This document shows, in pieces, positions 46,646-50,300 of a DNA stretch of 63,859 nt (its first letter is position 1; every line of letters begins with the position of its first letter). Both the position numbers and the translations under genes were made by a program. The DNA is from Saccostrea cucullata (lineage: Eukaryota), in NCBI RefSeq assembly GCF_032062105.1, contig NW_026930674.1, positions 372,001-435,859 of the forward strand. The letters are read 5' to 3'. The notes beneath the pieces are model-generated. The model ran no database searches, was not told the DNA's origin, and saw only the letters and a program-made list of their open reading frames with translations.

Positions 46646-47385
46646 TTAAGTTGAAGTATTTCTTCAATATTTCATATAGAGCACAGCCTCTGATCCAAAA
46701 TATGCAATTTCATACTGAAAGATCTGTTTCTGAAGATTAAAAAACATGTACCCCAGTATTAATTTTTGGATCCTGGGCTGTGCTCATCTTTTAATCATTT
46801 GCTGAAGGTAGTCAAATACATGTGTTTTCTGCAATATTCAAGAACATTGCATTTTCTAAAAGCTTGTTTTCCAATACTCAGATTCTCAAAAAGTAAACTT
46901 ATTACAGGAAATAAAAGCACTAAGTCTCTTCTTTATTTTGATAAATGAAATAGGAAAGAGGGTGATAGATTAATTGATTCAAGGACAAGGCCATTTTTGC
47001 ATAAACTGAACCAAGCTCTTTAAAAAGCTGTTATTTTTCATTTTAACAATGTACTTGCTAAAATATGGGAAAAGAATTTTTGAAGATTTTTATGCATTTT
47101 CACTAACTGCTCAATACAGCCCCACCCTAACACCAGAGCCCCAGAAAACTCACAAACAAACAAAATGCCCTGCTTCCTGGAGGTTCATTATATAGCAGTG
47201 CAATAAATCACGTCGTCATGAATTTCAAAGTATAATTAACAACTATACTAATTTATTAAATATTTACAATCTGTTATTTGATATATTATAAATGCTTTCT
47301 GCAGTCTTTCATAGTACATGCACTCCGAATCTTGTAAAAATAGTCAAGAATATTGCACTTTTGGCCCCACTTCAAACAACTGCTG

Positions 47386-50300
47386 TTAGAATGGATTTAA
47401 ATGTACAGGTGAACACTTCTCCATCACAGAATCAAGTAATGAAGTACCAGTTATTATTTTAGAAGTGGCTATCACATAGTCTGTACCTCCTGAAATAAAT
47501 AAAAAAAAGATATAAAAATTGTATTGCAATAAGTTACAAAGGGCAATAACTCCAAAGATTTTGTTGAAAAATCAATATTTCCTTTTCTATTTTTTTCTGT
47601 GTGATAACATTTCTTATTGTTTTCTCTGTGATTACTAGTATTCTTTGAAAGTAGGGGGTATTGATTTCTTGATAATTCAACTGGAATGTAAATGAGTTAT
47701 GGAGGCCTAATACTTGGTATTCATGTTAATCTCCTGCAGCTGTGTCCGACATCAGTGGGCATCTATTGAAATTACCAGGTAACATGGGAGGCCTCATGTA
47801 ATTTCAATCTATTTGATGATATCATTTTAAAATTTAAATTTACAATTTTATTTCACAATGAAATATAAATACAAGGAATCACTGTCTACAGGGTTACACA
47901 GGGTTATTGCGAATTCACGGATATAGCAAAGTTATCTGGAATCTCCAGTGAATTCCTTATACGGATATAACGAATTACAGATATAGCAAAGTAATTTCAT
48001 AGGTTGCAGTGACTTTGTTATAACCGAGTTTTACTGCAGACAATAATATGTACTTGTTACTTTTCTTGTGATTACTTACTTCCGGGGGGTGGGGTGGAGA
48101 AGCAAGGTTTGGTGTAATATATATAACAAGGGTCATGCTTTCTGCTAGGGCTGGTACAATACACAATACAATACAATACAATAATTTCTATAGCGCATTA
48201 TAATAATGACACTCTAGTGCGCTTCACATTAAAATAGATATAAGCTTACAAACTGGCGAACAAATTACTTTAAAAAATACATGATACATATTTGTGCATA
48301 AAAATAGGATATCTAAAAGACTTTATGTGTACTAAAAGGCCATAAAAAATTACGTTGCGTGGGAGTCACTCTAAAAAAATTACAACTTATGAAACATTTT
48401 AAAAAATAATAATAATAAATATTAAAGGAACCTGTACTCGATCTACGAAATAAAAAATATTAAAAACTTTAAGATCAGTTCAGTGTCCTTTTACATTAGG
48501 TATATATATATATCACTATAAAAACAATATTTACATTCCCTTTACATATTTACAATATCCCAGTTTTTTTGTGATGCACACTGTCACAATGTCAGGGGTC
48601 CTGAGTCCATGGACATGGGGTCTACAACCATGAGTGGACTCAGGACACCTGACATTGTGAGGATTTTCAATATGAGTTTTATCTTTATTGATATATTAGG
48701 TCCTGGCATCAGAATATGAAACAAACTTTAGACTGCTTTTATTCCTGGAAATAAAACTCTAAATTAATTATAAAGAGATATCTTGCCAGCCATTTTATTT
48801 TACTGATTTTGCACCAATAGATAAATCTTTAAACATTTCAGAGAATAACATCCACATTCAGACATTACTTCCTATAGCATAAAAAAATTTTAAAAGATGA
48901 ACATTCTTTAAAATTATTTTTCCTAAATTGTTTGATATAAATTCTGAGTTCTTTTCTCATAAAAGCTGAATAAAAATACACATATGCATCACTTTCACTC
49001 TATTACTGATTTGCTTTTTAGATATTATTGCAGAATATTGTCTAAGCCCTTATATTGTGGTGCAGGTTATGCCACAATGCTGTTGATAAGATGAGAAGTG
49101 TGTGATGAAGAGTGGCATGTAATGGTGATCAGGGTCAATGAAATGTTTTACCAGACATGCAGTTTGATATTGAGTCACAGTTAAGGAAAAGCTTCCATCA
49201 AGGAGTTCACTAATGATGTTCCAGTGATTATTTTTGTGGCATAAACAAGATATTCACATCCTGCTGCAATTCAAAGTGGATCTTCCTTTAAGAACTGTTT
49301 ATCACGTAATACATGTACATGTACTTTTAACATTATCGGGATTTCTGTAAACCAGCTATTATTTAAGAAAACTGTTATTTGTACATTGACAGTAACTCAT
49401 TTGTCAAACTGAAATTAAATTTTAATTTTCACATCTGGACAGGAAATTTACAGTCCTACCTATATTTGCTTGCAATAATAATTATTTGTTAAATAAATTA
49501 GGATGAACAACTGAGGGAAATTCCTAAAAACAAAAATTGGTTAACAGTTTGTGCAATTAATCATCAATAGTAATCTTATCACAACAAAATACTTACTTTT
49601 TGAAAATCAGAAAAAATATTAATCAGAATCAGAGAAAATATATATCACACGTTAAAGCTGATCGAGGCATAAGAAAAATGATAATGTTATTCTTCAGATA
49701 TCAGTGATATGCTTTTGAGATCGGTGTAAAGAGTTTACACACACGCATCCAAGTTTCATAATCTTCTGTCAATGACTTTTGGTCAGGATCATACCCCCCG
49801 AGATGAATTTGTGTGTTTCAATATTTAAAAACAAGTTTATAGCAAATAACATCAAACTTTCGTTAATGGTTTTAATATGTTTTCACCTTGAACCAAGAAA
49901 TATTGGAAAATTGACTAGATACAGAGAGCAACTGATACCTATTGTATAACAATTTCAGTCAACCCTGTTGATTTGTTGAGCCAGGTTTTCATTAACTTTC
50001 ATCCCTGATCATAAGTTATAACCACATTTTACTTCTCTGAATTCTTTAGAAAAAAACTTTTCTGCCATTATGTTTAAATTAAGAATATGAAAAACATTCA
50101 CATTTATAAATGTAACCTTTATGGCATTATAACGTTCTTGTGATTTTTTAACAACAAAGTTATATGAAATGCACAGGAAATGTATAAATTCACTAAGTCA
50201 AGTATTAGATACTACTACAGTGTATCGCTATGTACTTGTAAAATTACCAACAATTTATCAATTCAGACATCTTAATATCTTACATCTGTAACTTACCATC

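Follow-up and report, generated by a model that had tools for sequence, protein, structure and literature searches.

The HOPS and CORVET tethering complexes contain VPS33A as their SNARE-chaperoning subunit. In the oyster Saccostrea cucullata, the last intron of the VPS33A gene contains a second, diverged version of the last coding exon, which raises the question of what this sequence is, how transcripts use it and what it does to the C-terminus of the protein. We studied this locus in the window, i.e. the whole stretch of 63,859 nt that was analysed (contig NW_026930674.1).

The VPS33A gene in the window

The exons of the window map at 100% on two RefSeq proteins, XP_062567310.1 (P0362, 396 aa) and XP_062567309.1 (P0369, 403 aa). 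Both proteins belong to the 90% cluster of P0294, a Crassostrea VPS33A that has 91% identity to the window exons and carries the Sec1 domain PF00995 as well as VPS33A names. Judged by sequence, the gene can be assigned to VPS33A of the Sec1/Munc18 family rather than to another SM protein, and the window would comprise the 3′ two thirds of it. The first codon of both RefSeq models, isoform X1 and isoform X2, is an internal Met at 58992. The remaining 4.9 kb to the contig end, 58992–63859, yielded no exon for the N-terminus of VPS33A (∼207 codons). The gene looks truncated in this assembly. Separate contigs of 16.9 and 17.8 kb carry two VPS33A-like proteins of the same species, P0363 and P0373, both annotated as 'partial'.

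Searches were run with single window exons and not with a joined spliced model, and the full-length proteins referred to here are database records. Against the representative library, the 58-aa exon at 59004–58831 returned fragments (one of them, P0001, 98% identical) and distant full-length proteins, and the leech orthologue P0048 used as the query led to molluscan VPS33A proteins. The hagfish representative P0131, used as the query of a word search, yielded vertebrates only. Alignments of the two tail exons gave no match in either a word search or a metagenome scan.

Exons and introns at the 3′ end of the gene

The gene lies on the minus strand. Its penultimate coding exon (50297–50419) is covered by contigs of RNA runs X1, X5 and X12 on 50296/7–50419, and residues 330–369 of both RefSeq proteins map to it at 100%. 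The last base of the exon, G, opens a split codon, and the donor gtaagt comes next. Directly upstream of the exon, at 50397–51655, is an array in which a 43-nt unit occurs ∼24 times (about 10 copies at period 129), with each unit ending in a ttttag/g-like acceptor on the minus strand; as the RNA contigs start the penultimate exon at 50419, the acceptor used is that in the last 43-nt unit. The same intron holds a second minisatellite at 51998–52897, with 19 copies of a 47-nt unit that are 93% matching, which yields a ladder of overlapping 38–43-aa ORFs on the plus strand.

The canonical last coding exon, hereafter the distal exon, occupies 47386–47489 and ends in ...HLNPF. It is in phase 1 (G + GA = Gly), continues for 33 codons and stops at 47388–47386, and its acceptor has a strong polypyrimidine tract with a long T-run. 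Its peptide agrees at 100% with the tail of RefSeq isoform X1. The 3′ UTR of the gene extends at least over 47228–47385, as RNA contigs reach 47228 (run X1), 47276 (run X5) and 47027 (run X2, more diverged), and it includes an AATAAA at 47257–47252.

Between these two exons lies the alternative, or proximal, exon of 112 nt at 49152–49263. It also enters in phase 1, with the G of 50297 and CA forming Ala, and then runs for 26 further codons; the coding part spans 49263–49184 and is followed by a TAA stop at 49183–49181 and 29 untranslated nt before the donor, the GT of which is at 49150–49151 (ctg/gtaaaa; joint 47488/49151, with CT..AC ends on the plus strand). The initial annotation of this DNA, made from the sequence alone, had described a phase-1 frame with its own stop at 49263–49181, and all of its coordinates are borne out by the minus-strand sequence. 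The NAGNAG acceptor that it had pointed out is there as well, at 49261–49265, with two AG (49265–49264 and 49262–49261) 3 nt apart. The upstream AG is the one used, as shown by the RNA joint at 49263 and by the junction ...DD-AG-CEY of RefSeq isoform X2. A purine-rich stretch precedes this acceptor, and its polypyrimidine tract is weak. Combined with the NAGNAG acceptor and the donor ctg/gtaaaa, this poor tract gives the exon the features of a weak, regulated exon.

Inclusion of the proximal exon removes a GT..AG intron at 49264–50296 (1033 nt, skipped by the joint 49263/50297 in RNA run X1), and the intron between the proximal and the distal exon, defined by RNA joints and sequence, spans 47490–49151. 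About 47792–48039 of the last intron is a highly repeated, expressed element with a summed contig depth in the thousands in all four RNA runs; it has many diverged contigs with loose ends and is probably a transposon fragment.

RNA joints and the mode of splicing

Logan contigs from four runs, each of a different study, were aligned to 46800–50500. In one 170-nt contig of RNA run X1, 30 nt of the penultimate exon are followed by 49263–49152 and by 27 nt of the distal exon; the joints, 50297^49263 and 49152^47489, are both GT..AG on the minus strand. This is the one inclusion contig, present in one of the four runs, and its flanks of 30 and 27 nt are just under the 31-nt bridging rule. The skipping joint 50297^47489, also GT..AG, is present in RNA runs X1, X5 and X12. 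Both junctions by which the initial annotation had proposed to check the exon were thus found. The contigs give no isoform ratios, and contig depth was not used to rank the isoforms. Chimeric assembly of the inclusion contig was considered and is unlikely: a 31-mer graph could be bridged only by a longer identical stretch than any the two exons have in common, and each joint coincides exactly with a splice site. As the exon is single-copy in the 1.17-Gb assembly, a retrocopy does not explain the joined form either.

Since the inclusion contig leaves the proximal exon at a GT donor and enters the distal exon, the proximal exon is a cassette exon and the distal exon becomes 3′ UTR when the cassette is included. 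Both of its splice sites are used, it carries an in-frame stop, and skipping it gives the other tail. Very probably, therefore, the proximal exon is a weak stop-containing cassette, and the gene obtains two C-termini by its inclusion or skipping. The junction 49152^47489, seen in that one contig, has independent though indirect backing from Ostrea edulis, in which the cassette likewise seems to be joined to the canonical exon. The Ostrea edulis alternative exon has no stop, and the tail of its isoform X1 (P0370) includes RLCDSH; the canonical exon of the window (47459–47488), read one base out of frame, gives RYRLCDSHF-stop, like this Ostrea edulis tail. Isoform X2 of Ostrea edulis (P0364) ends differently, so there are seemingly at least two ways to terminate the alternative form.

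The initial annotation had favoured another mode, an alternative last-exon choice giving two mutually exclusive C-termini. Transcripts entering at acceptor 49263 would then have a separate 3′ UTR that ends at an intronic poly(A) site past 49181, and no mRNA would contain both terminal exons. Minus-strand AATAAA motifs are found at 48799–48794, 48743–48738 and 48689–48684, and rare forms can escape contigs. However, the only contig that carries the exon leaves it at the GT donor (49151) and splices from 49152 to 47489, and 48784–49150, including the sequence directly downstream of the exon, is covered by no RNA contig of the four runs (3′ ends cannot be read from contigs). The downstream AATAAA that the initial annotation had noted is present at 48799–48794, yet this nearest motif lies about 380 nt past the stop, in an AT-rich window with 233 AATAAA, roughly one per 550 nt per strand here. 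In addition, Ostrea edulis isoform X1 runs from the alternative into the canonical exon. We therefore regard an alternative last exon as highly unlikely. Mutual exclusivity does not hold at the RNA level, as the run X1 contig joins the proximal to the distal exon; it is the stop codon that makes the two tails exclusive.

A stop codon counts as premature in nonsense-mediated decay (NMD) when it lies >50–55 nt upstream of the last exon junction. In the cassette, the stop ends at 49181 and the exon at 49152. With the stop only 29 nt before the last junction, the cassette does not classify as an NMD poison exon by this rule, which is a vertebrate one, and the inclusion mRNA should escape decay. 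For the stop-containing cassette, the following course is proposed. Skipping of the cassette would produce the canonical protein, RefSeq isoform X1; its inclusion would keep the phase, give 27 residues instead of the canonical 34, terminate at 49183–49181 and leave the distal exon untranslated. We infer that the alternative isoform is translated.

Annotated isoforms and their spread among molluscs

The tail of XP_062567310.1, annotated as VPS33A-like isoform X2 of Saccostrea cucullata, is identical to the translation of 49263–49184, and the tail of XP_062567309.1, isoform X1, is the peptide of the distal NPF exon. The two isoforms share a 369-aa prefix and then differ in the last 34 (isoform X1) or 27 (isoform X2) residues. 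RefSeq isoform X2 represents the same gene and exon as those of the window, with no difference at the protein level; it is an automatic model with no described function. Together with the inclusion joint, it supports the second C-terminus without an NPF end that the initial annotation had predicted. The exon was not 'hidden', as had been thought. The alternative exon and its isoform are already known from annotation, in this genome and in many other molluscs, and are apparently undescribed in papers; a full-text literature search found no paper on these VPS33A isoforms.

Isoform pairs are annotated in Saccostrea echinata (alternative tail in isoform X2), Magallana gigas/Crassostrea angulata (610 and 603 aa; isoform X2 of Magallana/Crassostrea), Ostrea edulis (isoforms X1/X2), Mytilus (isoforms X1/X2), four scallops (isoform X1), Mercenaria and Ruditapes (isoform X2), Mya (isoforms X3/X4), Haliotis (isoform X1) and Biomphalaria (isoform X1). 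In every one of these taxa, (K/H/M/T)LNPF terminates one isoform of the pair but not the other. The alternative tails of the other molluscs likewise replace the same last ∼30 residues with a homologous strand–helix segment without NPF, and the tails of the different molluscan groups differ greatly from each other. In the heterodont clams Mercenaria, Ruditapes and Mya, isoform X1 (P0392, P0394 and P0397) is a third form, in which 8–11 residues are inserted between the penultimate exon and the canonical tail; such an insert points to one more small exon, or else to an alternative donor, at this junction.

The genomic order is the same in the mussel, where one contig (L095) carries the penultimate exon, the non-NPF exon and, 5.1 kb further, the NPF exon. 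A duplication restricted to the lineage of the window was also considered. This reading had rested on two relatives (L004 and L009) and the metagenome contigs L015, L019, L025 and L040, with one tail exon each, and it was rejected: mussel locus L009 ended 1 kb past the non-NPF exon, and the NPF exon lies beyond (L095). Relative L004 shows the NPF exon only, and L015, L019 and L040 have annelid-like tails with introns of 0.4–1 kb and no second copy. Three further metagenome matches (L021–L023) are vertebrate-type cDNA contigs with bird- and fish-like tails.

Origin, age and constraint of the second exon

The peptides of the proximal and the distal exon align without gaps, with 13 of 26 residues and 46 of 78 nt identical. 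The two exons are on one strand, share phase 1 and lie 1.7 kb apart, as tandem exon duplicates do. In the shared 8-residue core, KIITGTSL, three synonymous third positions are the only differences, exactly as the initial annotation had it. A profile was built from 15 VPS33A tails of other species, none of them from the window, and scored against 3,619 six-frame stop-to-stop fragments of the window. The distal exon scored an E-value of 6e-15 and the proximal exon 4.7e-8, compared with 0.13 for the next-best fragment. The claim that the proximal exon duplicates the last coding exon is thus upheld by both the gap-free alignment and the profile. In a search of the PDB (177,635 distinct sequences), each of the two peptides matched human VPS33A (4BX9) only, at the homologous C-terminal residues 571–593/595 of 596, the match of the proximal peptide being weak on its own (E 0.85).

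Between the two copies, pS is 0.82, so that synonymous sites are saturated, and pN is 0.28; the intron flanks, 200 nt on each side of the two copies, show no similarity. These values point to an old duplication of which the proximal copy has kept frame, phase and splice sites. The last coding exon would have been duplicated in tandem long ago; the distal copy would be the ancestral one, with an LNPF tail as in nearly all molluscan, annelid and cnidarian VPS33A tails compared. A tree of 39 tails (34 columns, largely unresolved) places the four oyster alternative exons in one clade (95% support), which means that the exon was retained from a time before the oyster genera diverged. A single origin of all alternative exons is neither shown nor rejected by this tree (p-AU 0.39).

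The second copy may nevertheless be a decaying duplicate that is included by splicing noise only, giving an unproductive transcript and no functional protein. Its acceptor is weak, its inclusion was seen in one of four RNA runs, its isoform is known at the level of RNA and annotation, and its tail evolves fast between oyster genera: between Saccostrea cucullata and Magallana/Crassostrea, 17 of 27 residues of the alternative exon are identical, compared with 29 of 34 for the canonical exon. Past the helix, the alternative tail diverges fast between genera, and part of the exon may be weakly constrained. On the other hand, the open frame, the phase, the acceptor and the donor are all intact despite the saturation of synonymous sites. 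Between Saccostrea cucullata and S. echinata, the alternative exon is conserved like the remaining protein (26 of 27 residues identical, with 30 of 34 for the canonical exon and 97.3% for the remaining protein). The single clade of the oyster alternative exons predates the genus split, second exons of a comparable kind have persisted, and are annotated, in mussels, scallops, clams and gastropods, and a stop 29 nt from the junction makes the transcript an atypical target of decay. Mere decay of the duplicate is thus an even slimmer prospect than an alternative last exon. A chance open frame in an AT-rich intron that happens to resemble the last exon, for which one could cite the length of only 27 codons and the weak PDB match, has a negligible probability in view of the profile score relative to the next-best fragment, the PDB match to homologous VPS33A residues and nothing else, the spliced RNA and the identical RefSeq isoform.

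Predicted effect of inclusion on the C-terminus

The stop-containing cassette, when included, encodes residues that keep the Tyr and the Thr that are invariant in the tail alignment (A4), as well as the hydrophobic strand pattern. In a structure model of the alternative isoform of S. echinata, these residues form a strand (579–585) and a helix (591–598), at a mean pLDDT of 66.8 and about 57–78 in the segment; the model of the canonical isoform has a pLDDT of 50.9 and is too poor for a comparison with the alternative isoform. The alternative residues are thus predicted to form the same final β-strand and short helix of SM domain 2. The initial annotation had presented this assignment as established; it agrees with a model of moderate confidence, which supports it weakly.

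If the strand and the helix are rebuilt in this way, the main functional change brought about by inclusion is most likely the loss of the NPF-ending tail. A C-terminal NPF, mostly as (K/x)LNPF, is conserved in VPS33A of molluscs, annelids, nemerteans and octocorals (P0286–P0355; L015, L019, L025 and L040), and vertebrate VPS33A tails have PF only. Canonical tails almost always have LNPF; the alternative tails never do. The switch would most likely toggle whatever the NPF tail does and leave the fold intact. A literature search found no paper linking VPS33A to an NPF motif. We may further speculate that the LNPF of invertebrate VPS33A is a functional short linear motif, e.g. a ligand of EH-domain endocytic proteins, removed by a splice switch that has been kept since before the bivalve/gastropod split. 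This proposal, drawn from motif conservation, is unlikely to be right as a whole; if true, it would imply a second HOPS/CORVET pool with different recruitment or partners. That molluscs keep two versions of the last strand–helix segment of VPS33A, with and without LNPF, is in itself of modest biological value, and the oyster and mussel isoforms offer a simple handle on the role of the VPS33A tail.

Comparison with known systems

The oyster locus resembles mutually exclusive tandem exons in that two adjacent homologous exons have the same phase and one of them is translated per mRNA. It differs from them in that the inclusion mRNA carries both exons, and exclusivity comes from the stop codon and not from splicing.

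The closest analogue is found in another SM protein, mammalian STXBP1/Munc18-1, in which a 110-bp stop-containing sequence is included or skipped just before the transcript end to give two C-termini, M18L and M18S (PMC4667524). The 112-nt cassette with a stop in oyster VPS33A is its counterpart in a different paralogue and phylum, and a common origin of the two cassettes is unlikely. Functional differences are documented for the Munc18-1 variants, whereas the oyster VPS33A isoforms are known from sequence and RNA. The Munc18-1 parallel suggests that SM proteins have repeatedly resorted to a stop-containing cassette to tune their C-terminus.
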